Assembly: GCA_020891255.1 (NCBI GenBank)
Contig: BQFW01000009.1
Coordinates: 1,364,001-1,428,000, forward strand
From: Entomortierella parvispora E1425
Taxonomy: Eukaryota > Fungi > Mortierellomycota
Length of the DNA: 64,000 nt
Reading direction: 5' to 3'
The position numbers were made by a program, and so were the translations under genes. The notes below the pieces were generated by a model. It did not search any database. It saw only the letters and a program-made list of their open reading frames with translations, and had not been told where the DNA came from. Positions within the stretch are counted from its first letter, which is position 1; every line of letters begins with the position of its first letter. Shown one piece after another: positions 6,268 through 24,508 of this stretch.

Positions 6268-7900
6268 ATGTCAATTCCCAGTAAAAACTTGCCGATCGAC
6301 CCGGACAGGAAAGGGGACTCTTCATCCTTTCCGAAGTCCAAGAAACGCTCTACTACCAAGCTTGTCTGGATTCTCCGACTCTTGCCCGCCGTCCTATTTG
6401 CATGCCATACTTATGTAGCGCAAGGTCCTTTCCAATCTCGAACCTGCCTTATTTTTGGCCGTAACTGTCGATCCAACACTGATGTCTACATGGACGCCTC
6501 CATTAACGTGGAAAAGGAAAACTACTACAATCCTGTTGTTCAGTACTACAAGTCCCTGTTCCAAACTCATGAAGACATCGGCGGATCACTGTCTGTATTT
6601 GTGAATGGTCAGGAGACTCTGAACATCTTTGCAGGATCCAAAGATCTGGAAGGTCGGATCAACTACGATGATCTGACCCTTCAACAAGTGTACTCTTCTG
6701 GAAAGGCGGTTGAGGGCATCGTGATGGCTCAATTGGTTGACAAGGGATTGGTGGACTATGAAGCACCCGTAAGCAAATACTGGCCTGAATTTGCAGTAAG
6801 TGGCAAGGAGAACGTCAGGATCGTGGATGTGATGACACATGAGTCAGGAGTGTTTTATCTGGACGACAAGCTAAGGGATCTGACCTGGGAATCGCTCAAG
6901 GACCAGGCGGCGTTTTCGGCCCGACTTGCGGGTCAAAAGCATTTCTTTGATGGAGAGATCAAGAGAGCCTATCAAGCTGTGAGTCGTGGATGGTACTTGA
7001 ACGAGATCGTGAGACGAGTCGATCCTCAGGGACGGACGATAGGTCAGATCGCCAGACAAGAGCTGATGGCGGATTACAAGGATGTTGAGCTTTACTATTC
7101 ACATTTCGACAACGATTCAGATTGGGAGAAGCGCTTGTCACCCATGGTCGACTACCCAGTTTTGAGGATCATCGGCAGACTGTTGTTGCCAAGGGCAGTG
7201 CAGACCAACAAATGGTTTGGATACCCAGAAATGGCACCGCTCCACCCCTTGGTTTGGCAATTAGTCATGAGATGGAGCTTGTCCTCTGAGGCGTTATCAC
7301 CCAGGATGGCACCTTTTGCCAAGGATTTTCGAACCAAAGAGGCACACGCTACAGAGAGCACCAGCTTCTCTTTGAAGACAAACGCGCACTCTGTAAGTTT
7401 CATTTTTTTTTTTTTTTGTTTTTGTTTTTTTGTTTTTTGTTTTTTTTCCTTCCTATTTCTTTGCGCTAACTCGTTCTCCCCCATCACAGTTGGCCAAGCT
7501 CATGTCGATGATGGCCAAAAGGGGCGAGTCCTTGGACCCTGGAAATGAACCTGATCTTCTCTCTCGCAAGACTTATGAAGAAGCCACGGCCTTTCACTCT
7601 GACCTCCCCTGCACAATCACTTTCGATACTCTACCACTCTCTCGGGGCGGGTGGGTCAAGTCCAAAGATTTTTATCCGGCTGGTCAATCTTTGAAAGGAG
7701 TCGAGGTTCAAGGATGGGGAGGCGCTGGCGGATCATTAGTCCTTTGGATTGAGGAACTGAACATTGGATTTTCTTATGTCACCAACGCCTTCGGAGCCAC
7801 TGAAGGTATTTTAGGTGACTTCAGAGGCAAGAATCTCTTGGATTTGGTCGTGAAGGCTCGGAAACAAGAACTCGGACTGTTGCCATTCGATAACGAATAA
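6268..7900 (+). CDS. Beta-lactamase-family serine hydrolase (~511 aa), N-terminal hydrophobic anchor, 2 exons
   Basis: Exons 6268-7392 and 7490-7900 (GTAAGT...CAG). SxxK motif VYSSGK, LVDYEAPVSKYWPEFA..GKENV, VMTHESG, WGGAGGS. Confidence 0.87.
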
Positions 7901-8020
7901 AATACCGTTGAATTTCATGGTTTTTTTTTTATTGTAGTCGAGTTGACGTGTGGTCATGAAGATCAGGAAAAGAGAAGGACGTGGTCTTCCAGCGTAATGA
8001 ACCCCAGGTACACTACCGAT

Positions 8021-8539
8021 TTACCACCAGCGGCGACCCCATCCCCACCCACGACCCCAGCCCCAGCCTCGGCCCCATCCGCGACGGCCCCATCCCCAAC
8101 CCCACTTTGATGGTCCTTCTCCGATGTCTTCGCCTCCAACCTTGCCGACATCGACATCGGCGTTGACCAAATCCTTGGCTTGCTCGGCCTTCGCAAGTTG
8201 GAAGTCTGCCTCTTTAGCTGTAGTTGACATCAGAACCGGTGAGATGTAACCGTGGTCGGGCTGGTTTTCGGTTCCGTAATGGACAATCTGGCTTGGCATC
8301 ATACCAGTACCTTCGTTGAGGTTGCCATAGTTGATGGGGGCTGAGGCAGTGTTCAAGGTCTTGGAAAAAGCTGAAGGGGCCGACAACCCGCCGAGGTTGA
8401 GCTTGTCAATCTTGGCATCAAGCGAGGAGCCAGGTGTGACCAAAGCCTCAGGACTGGCACCGTAGGCGACAAGGGGAGCAGCCGAGACTGCAGAAACGGC
8501 GAGAGCAGTGCCGAGAGCGAAAATGGTAGGGGGATGCAT
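8021..8539 (-). CDS. Small secreted protein (172 aa) with C-terminal Trp/Gly/Arg-rich cationic tail
   Basis: Signal-peptide-like MHPPTIFALGTALAVSAVSA. Intronless. Ends KWGWGWGRRGWGRGWGWGRGWGWGRRWW*. Confidence 0.8.
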   Translation of the reverse strand: MHPPTIFALGTALAVSAVSAAPLVAYGASPEALVTPGSSLDAKIDKLNLGGLSAPSAFSKTLNTASAPINYGNLNEGTGMMPSQIVHYGTENQPDHGYISPVLMSTTAKEADFQLAKAEQAKDLVNADVDVGKVGGEDIGEGPSKWGWGWGRRGWGRGWGWGRGWGWGRRWW

Positions 8540-8965
8540 CTTAACCTTTTTTTTTTTGAGTGGCGTTGATGGCAGGATAGGGAAGAACAGTGGAATGGGG
8601 GACACTCAACTGGAAGATGAGGGTCGTTTTATGGGTAGCTCATCAAGTTTCAATTCAGCAAACTCACCACCTTTATAAATCACTGGTCGATGAATCGAGC
8701 AATTCCTGTTGCGTTTTGCTGGCTGTTGGATATCATTGAGAGCTGATTGTTGCCTGGCAGGATGATCTCCGATGCTGAGGCTCAGGTCCTTCTCTGCAAT
8801 CTCATCCTTCTTGATGGTTGATGGCCTTCGGGGAAATATGGACTATATGTCCCGAAATGGACGTTTTTTTTTTCAGGGTAGACATAAAGCCCTGGGGATG
8901 ACAGCACTTTTTCATTACATTCACCCACTCTTCGGCACCACATTCAACTGGCACCATCCCCCTGT

Positions 8966-9493
8966 ATGATTTGGAACGTATTCATCGCCGCCTTGGCTGC
9001 TGCCTCTGCCTCCTCTACCAACTTGAAGCCGGCTTCCTCTCTAAATGCTGGAGCTTTTGAGCTGTATTCGAAGCTGCCTGCCCTCACTGTTGACCCGGTC
9101 TTGAAGGTCGTCTCGACGATAAGCCCCTCCGTCCAGGGCTCCACTTCCGGGACTAGAAATGACTTCATTGTCAAAAAATCGAGCGAAACAGACACTGAAG
9201 GCAATGGCAGCAAATCAGATCCGATTCCAAACCTCACCATTACCAAGGATCAACTCGAGCAGGCTCTTGGTTCAGCTCTGGATATCAAGTTCAATCTCGA
9301 GATCCTGACCAATAGAGCTGGTTATAAACTTGACTACGACAAAAACAGCAATGCAAAGCCACAGGTATTGGGTGAGATACCAGTGCACTTGAAGGTTCAC
9401 CGCTTGACGATTGGAGGAGTCCTGATTCCTACGATGACCTCCAAGTCCATTGACGAAGAACAGGGGCCAGTGAACTACGGAAACATCCTTTGA
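8966..9493 (+). CDS. Small secreted protein of unknown function (175 aa)
   Basis: ATG-initiated ORF with signal-like MIWNVFIAALAAASASS. AATAAA directly after the stop. Divergent from the 8021-8539 gene. Confidence 0.7.
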   Translation: MIWNVFIAALAAASASSTNLKPASSLNAGAFELYSKLPALTVDPVLKVVSTISPSVQGSTSGTRNDFIVKKSSETDTEGNGSKSDPIPNLTITKDQLEQALGSALDIKFNLEILTNRAGYKLDYDKNSNAKPQVLGEIPVHLKVHRLTIGGVLIPTMTSKSIDEEQGPVNYGNIL

Positions 9494-10259
9494 ATAAATA
9501 AAAAGAGCAGTAACTACGACTGTTGCCTCCCGCACGTGCCAAAAAATTTGTCTTCCAGAAGATTTCGGGTCAATCATTTTGCGGTCTGTGCGCAACAAAC
9601 TCACTCATCAATTCGCAGCCCCTCGGAGACTCTCACCCTCCCGATGGGAGTCGTACCTGATGGGCAAGGCATTAAAAGAGGAGGACCCCCTCCGTGGTTG
9701 AGACGACTGATGCCGACATCATACATGGTGTTCGAAAGGAACGACAACGAATATAAAGAAAGAAGAAGGGCCTTAAACCCGGGGAAGGTTGCTCAACCCC
9801 AAAGGGGAATTGGTCTCGATCTTGGCTTCGATCTTGGCATCGTTGCTACGAAGGTATAGGCAGATAGAAAGCGAGGACAAGGTCAAGAACAAAAAGAAAG
9901 AAATGGGTAAAAGAAGGAAAGGCATGAGACACAGAAGAGAAAGAAAAGTCGACGACCCGGGCCTGGGGATGCACAGGCCAAGACACTAGAAATGAAGTGC
10001 CGAACAGCCAATCCAACCCTATTCCCGGCCAATGTTTCTATCTTTCCTTTTGCCTTCCTTTTTTCTGCCCTTCCTTCCCGTCGTCGTCATCTTGCTCATC
10101 TCTTCTGCATCCCTGCCCTCGCCCTGCGTCATCGTCCACCCGACTGAACCGTTCATAAAGAGACATCTCATTCTCTTTTCCCCCTACCACATCCATCTTT
10201 CTTCCGCCCCCCCTTTGACCATCTCACAAAAAATCAACAATCAACCAAATCACCCGAGA

Positions 10260-21506: not shown

Positions 21507-21563
21507 TAGGAAATAACGTCTTTTTTGGTAGGAAATAACGGCTTTTTTTTTTTTTTTTTTTTT
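21507..21563. repeat. Left target-site array: two copies of TAGGAAATAACG(G/T)C, each followed by a T run (T6, T21)
   Basis: Copies at 21507-21520 and 21529-21542. T21 at 21543-21563 is the element's poly(A) tail on the minus strand. Confidence 0.9.
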
Positions 21564-24310
21564 GCAACATTTTATTTGCTATGTCGAGCCAAAGAAGTGA
21601 AGTGCGAGACCAAACTATCTACAGCCTGAGCAAAGCCGCGTGGTCCAGACGACAAATGACCCCGGATCCCCGCGCAACAAATGCCACGACTCGTCGCCGT
21701 GTTATAAAGAAGAGTAAAATGTTACAAAAAATGTATTTGCCCCATCTTTTCTAATGTCGATAAATGGACCTGGCCACGCACACAAGCCAGTAGTCGCTGG
21801 TCAGCCAGCGTAGGATCGTCTTGGGCACCTGGGCAGAGGCATTGATGGTGGTCAGTGTAAGCCTTGCCGCATTGGCAGATGCCTGGCGCAAGGATCGCAC
21901 CAGAGGCATTGTTCCACGGCTGCCCCGACGGGGCTGCCTGTTTTTTCATCTTGGGGCGGATGCCTTGAGACTTCTCCCAGGCAATGGTGACTTCGCACCG
22001 TGTCTTCCAGATACGTGCAAGGGCGTCTCTGTCCAGGCAGCGGATAAACTGGTGAGCAACTGCGACCACAACCGAGCGAGGTCCTTTAATAATCGGTGTC
22101 CAGGCTGTGATCAGCGCCGAGTGTAACAGTCCTTGGTAGGCAGTGACGATCGACCGTGCTGACGGCACTGGAGAGGCAATCTGTCCCACTTCAGGAGGTC
22201 TTATTGTTGCCAAGTCGTGGAATGCAGCGTACAGTGATGTCCACAGAGCCGTGTCCGATGGCTGATGCCATTGAAGTGCTCTCGGGGCGACAACGTTGGG
22301 TGTGCGGGCTTGTTGCTTACGATTCTTTTGGTAGCTTCCTCATTGGCTCTGGTGATGGCAGCTCTGCCCCACTTTGGAATAGTGGCCACTGCTTCCTCCC
22401 ATATCTGCCTTTGTTGGTTGACTGAGTTCGGACAAGTCCACACATGGTTGTTGTCCTCCTGCGCGTCGCCACATCGACAGCAGAGTGCGTCTTCGTACAT
22501 GTCTGGGTAGCGCGCTTGCATGACTGTAAGTGTTGGTAGCATCCCATGCAGTTTTTTGATGTGCTGTGTGCGTCGGGTAGTGTCCCCTCTGCTACTGAAG
22601 AAAGTATGGACTGGCCGTTTGGCGTGGATGATCGAGAGGGCAGATCGCCACTCCACGTCGTCCAAGTCGCTGATCGCTCTCTTAACTCGATTCTGTGCTG
22701 TCCATGTTTGGTGGCGGCGAATAGTGGTCTGTTGCTTGAGGAACTGGCGGAAGTCGGACTCCAACTGTTGTCCATGGCAAGATGCAATAAAGGTGATGTC
22801 GTCCTGGGTGCTGAGGTCCGCCTGCCATGGTGTCGTGTCCTGTTCAACCGCCTTTGTTGCGATAGCATCCGCCGTTTCGTTGCCCTGGTCGCCACTGTGC
22901 CCACGCACCCACTCAACCTCTGTGCGGCCCTCACGTTCTGCTACTACTGATGCCAAAACTGCCCAAAGGCCTGCGTGTGTTGCCCGTTGTCGCTTACGAG
23001 GCAAAGTTGTGTGGCGGTCGACAACAAGGTCTTGATACGAAGTGACAACGCCCTCGTTATCGAGGCGGACCAAAATATCTTGTCCAGGAGGCATGGACAC
23101 GATTGCGGCCAGAAGTCCCATGAGCTCTGCTTTGCCTGAGGATGCCTGACCGTCAGCACGACCCGGGATGGAGTGGGGGGCGGTAGTAGAGATGTCGGCC
23201 ACGCCAAATGCCATTGCGCATTCCTTCGTACCAGCGCGGACCATAAAGCCGTCAGAGTAGAGTACTTTACGCTCTTGTGAAATTGGTGACTGGCGTAGCT
23301 GGTGTAGAAGTTCAGCTTGGGCTTGAGGCATTGAAAGTGGGCCTACCTTGGCAATCTGCTCATGACATGGAGGAGGCAAAGGAGGGGGTGAGATGTGGAG
23401 AGGATGAATAGCGCTTTGGTCAACAGTGACAGTGAGTGGGTGTAAGTGTTGTTCAACACGTTCTCTGTTGGTGGTCACATCCCGGTCCCGTTCCTCGATA
23501 GCCTGGGAAATGTAGTCTGCTCTGATTTGCTGCCGTTGCTCAGCCTCCGCCAGATGTTGTTGATGTTTGTTGACTGCAAAGTCGTGTGCGTCCTTGAGTT
23601 TGCGGGCAAGGCGATCGGCAAGGAGCCCAAGTTGGAGCTGTGCACGGACTTGTAGACTCCGGAGCCCCTGTTGGGCGATCCGTTCAGCCTCCTTGATAGC
23701 GGTGGCCAGCTGTTGTGGTTTCGTGGCCAACAGACGTCGATAACGTGAAGCATCGGACTGAAGCTGTTGGCGCCTCTTTTCCAACGCGGCCTGCAGCTCT
23801 TGGACGAGCTGAGTCCTGGCTGGGATGGTGTCTGAGTCAGCTGCATTAAGACGTGTGGTCAGAGCGTTGTCAAGCCAACGAGAAGATCCGTGAAGCAAGT
23901 CGTCTGCATCTAGTGGCAGTCGTGCCAAGTACGTCGATGGCGGTGTGTCAACAACAAGATTGTTGGTGGCATCTATGCTGGCGGAAACTGAACGCGAAAG
24001 TGGAGTTAGGCCAAGGGTGGTGTCTGTGTCAGGGAAAAGCCGCCGAACGGCAGGGGCTGCAATGAAAGTGGGTGAAAATGAAGAAAACTGTGAAGAGGGT
24101 TGTGAAGATAACGGTGTTGATAAAAAAGGAGTGAGTGATGAAGAAAGGATAGGTGACGAAGGAGTGATGACAGGGGAGGAAGAGAGGGATAAAAAGGAAG
24201 GGCCGCTTGCTCCCAAAGACGATGGCGTTGAAGGTAACAGAGAAGAAGAAGGGGACAATGTAGAATGAGAAGAAGAAGAAGAAGACAAAGAGCCGATAGG
24301 AAATAACGGC
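21529..24310 (-). mobile_element. Non-autonomous non-LTR retrotransposon (L1/Tad-like 3' half, no RT or endonuclease) with poly(A) tail and target-site duplication
   Basis: A21 tail at 21563-21543 and flanking direct repeats TAGGAAATAACGGC (21529-21542, 24297-24310). ORF has RNase H, a CX2CX8HX3C knuckle and the IWKTRCEVTIAWEKSQGI C-terminal motif. Confidence 0.85.
21722..24288 (-). pseudogene. Retroelement ORF: Ser/Pro-rich + coiled coil + RNase H + zinc knuckle, one frameshift near 22328
   Basis: RNase H catalytic residues present: VLYSDG, KAELMG, VRLDNE, WVRGHSG..GNETAD. Knuckle CCRCGDAQEDNNHVWTC. The C-terminal part continues in another frame to TAA at 21722. No AUG in the first ~320 codons. 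Confidence 0.8.
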
Positions 24311-24346
24311 TTTTTTTTTTTTTTTTTGATAGGAAATAACGGCTTT
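24295..24346. repeat. Right target-site array: GATAGGAAATAACGGC-T17-GATAGGAAATAACGGC-TTT
   Basis: Two identical 16-bp copies (24295-24310, 24328-24343). The last is followed by TTT|AA. Confidence 0.9.
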
Positions 24347-24434
24347 AACAGGATTTAATGAATACATCACGTGATCCGAGGATTATTGTTATAGTTATAG
24401 ACGTCTTATTTTATAAGTAAATATCGATTGGTGA

Positions 24435-24508
24435 GCTTCCGTGGCGCAATTGGTTAGCGCGTCTGACTGTTAATCAGGAGGTTGGTGGTTCAAGCCCACC
24501 CGGGAGCG
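24435..24508 (+). tRNA. tRNA-Asn (GTT), no intron
   Basis: Acceptor stem GCTTCCG/CGGGAGC, A-box TGGCGCAATTGG, anticodon arm TCTGA-CTGTTAA-TCAGG, T-arm GGTGG-TTCAAGC-CCACC. Confidence 0.97.

Follow-up and report, generated by a model that had tools for sequence, protein, structure and literature searches.

We analyzed a 64,000-nucleotide (nt) stretch of the genome of the fungus Entomortierella parvispora E1425 (contig BQFW01000009.1, positions 1,364,001 to 1,428,000), hereafter called the window, in which a fragment of a long interspersed nuclear element (LINE) lies upstream of a tRNA-Asn(GTT) gene, framed by serial copies of one short target sequence. The array is the locus-level symptom of a tRNA-anchored LINE that resembles, in a fungus, the TRE5 elements of Dictyostelium discoideum. 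Analyses of the other copies of the family revealed that it integrates in a narrow interval upstream of tRNA genes, always in the same orientation, and that it reuses occupied positions at several loci.

Organization of the array upstream of tRNA-Asn

The target motif, M (TAGGAAATAACGGC), is found without mismatch at positions 21529, 24297 and 24330 and with one mismatch (G to T) at position 21507. On the + strand, the left part of the array reads M' (TAGGAAATAACGtC, the mismatched copy), T6, gg, M and T21, and the right part reads LINE fragment, gccga, M, T17, ga, M (24330-24343) and TTT|AAC (Table 1). A pattern search for M allowing up to 2 mismatches yielded 5 matches in the window for 0.23 expected, a number reached in none of 100 shuffles. 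The exact 14-mer occurs three times in the whole 38.9-Mb genome, each time in this array. Both searches and the sequence itself thus confirmed the four serial target copies and the layout that the original prediction, made from this stretch of DNA, had described. The window has 54 A/T runs of at least 8 bases, and a direct repeat of at least 9 bases flanks the T17 run only. In the sense of the LINE this run is an A17 stub, with GCCGTTATTTCCTA plus TC on both of its flanks. The first-strand nick maps between positions 24346 and 24347, i.e., 88 nt upstream of tRNA-Asn. The possibility that M is a part of the element or a recurrent target was rejected, as M is unique to the locus and other copies of the element have other flanks.

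Table 1. Features of the array and of its surroundings, in window coordinates.
Feature	Position	Strand	Description
Target copy 4, farthest from the tRNA	21507..21520	-	Joins the original far flank; one mismatch; sense GaCGTTATTTCCTA
Stub 1	21521..21528	-	Sense CC filler + A6; near-zero-length insertion; judged by its position, probably the oldest event
Target copy 3	21529..21542	-	Duplication at the 3' side of the 2.73-kb insertion
Poly(A) tail of the LINE fragment	21543..21563	-	T21 on the + strand
5'-truncated LINE fragment	21564..24291	-	ORF2 tail with RNase H, one frameshift
5'-junction filler	24292..24296	-	5 nt, sense TCGGC; missing in related copies; TC (24295-24296) re-duplicated by the next event
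Target copy 2	24297..24310	-	Duplication at the 5' side of the 2.73-kb insertion and at the 3' side of the A17 stub
Stub 3, poly(A) only (A17)	24311..24327	-	16-nt direct repeat GCCGTTATTTCCTATC on either side; probably the youngest
Target copy 1, nearest to the tRNA	24328..24346	-	Sense AAA-GCCGTTATTTCCTA-TC
CACGTG motif	24368..24373		Between the nick and the tRNA
tRNA-Asn(GTT) gene	24435..24508	+	Putative positional anchor; the 5' end of the element faces the tRNA

The assembly was generated from Nanopore reads and polished with Pilon at a coverage of x409, and the homopolymer lengths given here are approximate. An artefact of assembly or polishing at long homopolymers would fit the use of Nanopore reads and the fact that the short-read contigs end at homopolymers. 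These contigs match the left flank up to position 21532 and the right flank from position 24338. The Illumina-derived contig on the left, however, agrees fully with M'-T6-gg and the beginning of M, coverage and polishing argue against an artefact, and a like architecture is found at several independent loci (see below), which makes this explanation highly improbable. In a second sample deposited under the same species label, the array flanks were not present at 88% likeness.

A LINE family and its position relative to tRNA genes

The element in the array had been described as a retroelement of 2.75 kb. It is not complete: the minus strand carries here a 2.73-kb, 5'-truncated and frameshifted tail of open reading frame 2 (ORF2) from a LINE of 9.8 kb. 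The fragment corresponds to approximately positions 7037-9774 of a 9774-bp full-length copy found elsewhere in the genome, and its 78% DNA identity to that copy places it in a different, diverged subfamily. The window contains a 695-amino-acid (aa) ORF (22201-24288, minus strand), in which RNase H was the sole domain found and which matches approximately residues 1542-2124 of ORF2, with 77% identity to the full-length copy. After a frameshift, the next ORF, of 163 aa, represents the last 162 residues of ORF2 (2162-2323) in another frame, so that the ORF2 remnant of the window covers positions 21722-24288. As both are C-terminal parts of the full-length ORF2, the hypothesis that the 695-aa ORF defines a distinct element devoid of reverse transcriptase (RT) was rejected.

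Searching the genome returned more than 50 matches that have a common 3' end and differ in their 5' truncation, the signature of a LINE. Fragments have a median length of 457 bp (versus 9774 bp for the full-length copy), with 16 of 43 not exceeding 300 bp and the shortest measuring 66-88 bp. Target duplications of the family range from 9 to 21 nt, with a median of 16 (23 measured). The sole full-length copy found (C2:3481320-3491093) consists of 9774 bp followed by A29, is flanked by a perfect 18-bp duplication and has intact ORF1 and ORF2. ORF1 codes for 748 aa with an RRM; it also contains a CX2CX4HX7C stretch resembling a zinc knuckle on visual inspection and matched by no zinc-knuckle model of Pfam. 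In the 2323-aa ORF2, Pfam models identified an apurinic/apyrimidinic endonuclease (APE) at residues 47-280, RT at 658-936 and RNase H at 1809-1950. Among solved structures, ORF2 is closest to L1 ORF2p and the L1 endonuclease, and the homologues that we found come from fungi or metagenomes. Recent activity is suggested by several fragments elsewhere with 98-100% identity to the full-length copy. We also observed a related family of at least 12 copies with equal match scores and lengths, which has about 700 bp of 3' sequence in common with the LINE at 73-74% identity; the three copies that were fetched (L028-L030) have identical flanks, so that this family is a unit inside a larger repeat.

The LINE family occupies about 37 independent insertion sites, in a genome for which 192 nuclear tRNA genes have been reported. 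At least 16 of these sites are located upstream of a tRNA gene, with the 5' end of the proximal fragment 101-152 nt from the tRNA. The orientation is divergent, with the 5' end of the LINE toward the tRNA, at all 16 tRNA-associated sites. The position of the first-strand nick, with the duplication subtracted, was measurable at 14 sites and has a median of -93.5 relative to the tRNA (range -86 to -116), with 10 of the 14 values from -86 to -96. For 192 tRNA genes in 38.7 Mb, 14 of 37 randomly placed and oriented insertions would fall in such an interval with a probability of ~8e-47. This tight and orientation-specific position upstream of tRNA genes supports non-random integration targeted at tRNA genes. 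Comparison of the flanks and duplication lengths of the genomic copies, which had been proposed as a check, placed at least 16 of the about 37 sites upstream of tRNA genes, a non-random distribution, with duplications of 9-21 nt in the family.

The bases around the nick vary from site to site, as illustrated by the contexts gtca|cgtg, agtc|ccct, atagc|tatt and aatga|ccat (sense flank|start of the duplication). Duplication sequences differ at every locus examined, and no common target sequence of the R1/R2/Tx1 type was found. There is no L1-type TTTT/AA-like nick consensus either: among the other sites where the duplication is clear, about 17 in number, not one has a T-run|AA, and the window site alone reads TTT|AA. 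The heterogeneity of these other sites indicates that TTT|AA is incidental in the window. The original prediction had attributed the reuse to an L1-type nick, in other words to an endonuclease recognizing TTT|AA or M, with the rightmost copy alone keeping the sequence. The proximal copy does end in TTT|AAC, and the kinship of ORF2 to L1 ORF2p and the L1 endonuclease would fit, but neither the other nick sites nor the uniqueness of M in a genome where the family has about 37 sites agrees with sequence recognition, to which we give very little credence. The claim of site-specific integration held insofar as integration is non-random, at about -93 from the tRNA and divergent at all tRNA-associated sites, and failed as to a common target sequence. 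Targeting is set by position relative to a gene transcribed by RNA polymerase III (Pol III), not by sequence.

As a control set we used 40 tRNA upstream regions picked regardless of the element, from 63 listed of an estimated 192 tRNA genes. Eight of the 40 have A-runs of at least 8 bases in the same orientation, most of them ~105-125 nt upstream of the gene. The family 3' end precedes one of these eight runs, and a possible remnant of it (its last 5-8 nt) precedes two others.

An E-box-like motif, CACGTG(A), often in 2-3 copies, was observed 51-115 nt upstream of 24 of the 40 control tRNA genes, and most tRNA genes occupied by the LINE have it as well. We rejected it as the insertion anchor: it is missing at 3 of 14 sites, and the distance from nick to motif is more spread (standard deviation [SD] 9-13) than that from nick to tRNA (SD 7.4). 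CACGTG(A) may represent a conserved upstream element of tRNA genes in Entomortierella parvispora; a literature search on this motif upstream of tRNA genes found nothing.

Other sequences were looked for next to the LINE copies. In 3 of 20 loci without a detected tRNA, Rfam analysis returned tRNAs that had been seen already; it found neither 5S nor U6 nor any further type of Pol III gene in the 20. The full-length copy is located ~88 nt from a tRNA-like remnant for which ARAGORN makes no tRNA call. Relatives of the LINE in other genomes and metagenomes (P0002, P0005) gave no tRNA with ARAGORN, on contigs that end too near the element to judge. A tRNA-like repeat unit (GGGCGGGCGAGCCC ... GGTTCGATC) adjoins LINE fragments at C16:95998 (L002/L031) and C8:2349600 (L043). 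A metagenomic relative with 60% identity has, ~50 nt upstream of it and oriented like the LINE, a similar unit with A-box-like and B-box-like motifs (L089:1-95). None of these units was called a tRNA by ARAGORN, and Rfam, applied to the C8:2349600 locus only, found nothing. Several LINE copies (L005-L009, L023) are flanked by a second short repeat (tgctccacccaagggaaac.gact.aataaaatgcttttgca), which may be a short interspersed nuclear element or another resident of the same landing pads.

Probable repeated use of one insertion position

We consider it likely that this tRNA-gene-targeted LINE has inserted more than once at a single position upstream of tRNA-Asn(GTT). In the mechanism that we propose, the LINE machinery would introduce a nick ~90 nt upstream of the tRNA gene, into the strand on which this gene lies, at a site picked by its distance from the Pol III gene or transcription complex and not by its DNA sequence. 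Reverse transcription would be primed on the poly(A) tail, and the second strand would be cut 9-21 nt farther from the tRNA, generating the target-site duplication. Because the insert enters distal to the proximal duplication, the junction between tRNA flank and target would survive at the same distance. A later event could then nick this junction again, and it would duplicate the same bases, i.e., the old target copy together with a few bases of the 5' end of the prior insert. Reuse would thus be a consequence of positional anchoring to the tRNA gene. By analogy with TRE5-A, the anchoring factor would be Pol III, TFIIIB or TFIIIC.

In the window, the tRNA-Asn gene was probably hit three times at the same nick. 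The first event would have been a near-empty insertion of CC and about A3-6, which now forms the distal unit next to the mismatched copy. The second would have brought in the 5'-truncated 2.73-kb copy with its 5-nt filler, TCGGC, and the third the poly(A)-only A17 insertion, whose 16-nt duplication takes in the TC of the filler. As the duplication of the A17 stub contains these two filler bases, the stub is later than the 2.73-kb insertion, and the age of the units would rise leftward, away from the tRNA, as had been predicted. The order and number of events are what we infer from the array; the corresponding duplications would be 14-19 nt long, inside the family range.

Serial arrays are not limited to the window, with at least 4 further loci harboring head-to-tail fragments that have the same target copy between units. 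The locus C9:250466 (tRNA-Asn) contains a tandem of three fragments that differ in sequence variants and begin at 9593, 8749 and 9504 of the reference. From the tRNA outward, their duplications measure 18, 16 and 12 nt, and each younger one reaches into the 5' end of the older insert. The three fragments at C1:2879746 (tRNA-Leu) diverge from the full-length copy increasingly outward (2/124, 6/124 and 10/93), and the youngest duplication there ends with the 5 nt, CGTGG, with which the older fragment begins. Two units each are present at C8:2337059 and C15:987388. Serial reuse is therefore a property of the family. The proposal of successive target-primed insertions at one nick gained support from both the nested TC duplication in the window and these arrays with their differing truncation points and nested duplications. 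Since very strong 5' truncation is usual in this family, poly(A)-only inserts are expected at the far end of its length distribution.

The array could also have arisen in two events, if an early stub had created an M-An-M dimer and the 2.73-kb copy had then duplicated the whole dimer (~36-47 bp). The presence of an M-homopolymer-M unit on both sides of the element would be accounted for in this manner, and the empty-site allele that would exclude this history was not found. The two units differ, however, by A17 versus A6, TC versus CC and one base in M, so that two substitutions and an 11-nt homopolymer change would be needed. In addition, none of the 23 measured duplications exceeds 21 nt, whereas this history needs one twice as long as any of them, and the identical TC after both proximal copies of M would be a coincidence. 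We regard a two-event history, which the original prediction had named as a refutation (one long duplication in place of serial hits), as unlikely. Less likely still is a single insertion followed by local tandem duplication, through slippage during replication or through unequal exchange involving target copies or A-runs. Homopolymer-rich DNA is slippage-prone, and the window has many A/T runs; nevertheless, turning AAA into A17 between two copies of M takes more than a simple duplication, and the left unit would require three substitutions. Moreover, the repeated units at the other loci differ in truncation point and variants and hence arose as independent insertions, which slippage or exchange cannot account for.

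Several observations weigh against serial, tRNA-anchored insertion as the preferred reading. A canonical tRNA is missing from the examined flank at about half of the sites; several of these, the full-length copy included, adjoin tRNA-like remnants and others do not. The C9:250466 fragments show no rise in divergence away from the tRNA. In 265 kb of family loci, the window locus was the only one to yield poly(A)-only stubs with a duplication on either side. Lastly, none of the Logan short-read contigs, which are broken at homopolymers, bridges the array, and these contigs revealed no empty-site or intermediate allele.

Two loci present additional peculiarities. At the distal end of a three-unit array, L012 (C9:252070-252135) is an inverted 66-bp 3' fragment whose T7 run abuts the last target copy; it could stem from twin priming or from an event on the opposite strand. 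Upstream of a tRNA-Lys(TTT) gene (L013; C9:662626-663805), an insert-less 15-bp duplication is located directly proximal to a 973-bp copy, and an A29 run follows the distal target copy. This insert-less duplication may be the footprint of an aborted integration.

Comparison with known tRNA-associated and site-specific LINEs

The four serial target copies of the window thus have an ordinary mechanistic explanation and do not speak for a sequence-specific endonuclease site. The mechanism is already known from TRE5; the lineage, the host kingdom, the distance and the domain set, with RNase H and a very long ORF2, are new. We see the scales evenly balanced on an independent fungal invention of Pol III-anchored target-primed reverse transcription (TPRT), at about -93, whose landing pads may keep graded footprints of abortive integration, and with them the extent of TPRT at a fixed site. 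Such a series may run from the insert-less 15-bp duplication over poly(A)-only stubs and tails of 5-80 nt to the one full-length copy. A LINE of a mucoromycotan fungus with this orientation rule, a tight distance interval and the formation of tandems would constitute another convergent case of "safe-haven" targeting in a compact genome, and it would offer a further system, unrelated to the first, in which to study the reading of a Pol III complex by a TPRT machine.

tRNA-targeting non-LTR (long terminal repeat) elements are listed only in dictyostelids in reviews from 2016 and 2018, in which the fungal entries are LTR elements only, such as Ty1, Ty3 and Tj1 (PMC5006619, PMC5911963). In the literature that we searched, no tRNA-targeted LINE was reported outside dictyostelids, nor was any for a fungus, and searches on Mortierella or Mucoromycota with tRNA-associated LINEs found nothing relevant. 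The dictyostelid elements NLTR-A as well as NLTR-B likewise belong to the non-LTR type, carry an RNase H domain and integrate upstream of tRNA genes (PMC5911963). They differ from the fungal LINE by their distances, 2-6 bp and 39-64 bp, respectively, and by their restriction to dictyostelids.

Mammalian L1 elements, human L1 among them, provide the closest solved RT and APE structures to ORF2, and they have in common with the fungal LINE the use of TPRT, a poly(A) tail, frequent 5' truncation and duplications of ~15 bp. In contrast to L1, the fungal LINE has no TTTT/AA consensus, possesses RNase H and targets Pol III genes. Double insertions that leave a target duplication between head-to-tail copies have been described for R1 in Drosophila rDNA and for other elements, with distinct 5' truncations marking independent events (PMC5932611). 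The arrays described here have the same anatomy. R1 inserts at one specific site of the 28S rDNA, however, whereas the sites of the fungal LINE share only their position relative to the tRNA.

TRE5 of D. discoideum inserts ~47 bp (-47 +/- 3) upstream of tRNA genes, in the opposite orientation (PMC5391098, PMC5911963). At already occupied tRNA genes, of which tagged TRE5-A hit 91 of 98, TRE5-A forms TRE-TRE tandems and not nested insertions (PMC5391098, PMC5911963). Both TRE5-A and the fungal element are LINEs with APE and RT, ORF1 and ORF2, and a poly(A) tail. The two differ in their distance from the tRNA (-47 +/- 3 versus about -93), in their hosts, an amoebozoan and a mucoromycotan fungus, and in their domains, TRE5-A having a zinc-finger domain and no RNase H and the fungal LINE having a 2323-aa ORF2 with RNase H. 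The likeness to TRE5 is one of behavior: a non-LTR element inserts in a narrow interval upstream of tRNA genes, in a fixed orientation with its 5' end toward the tRNA, and forms tandems when the same gene is hit again.

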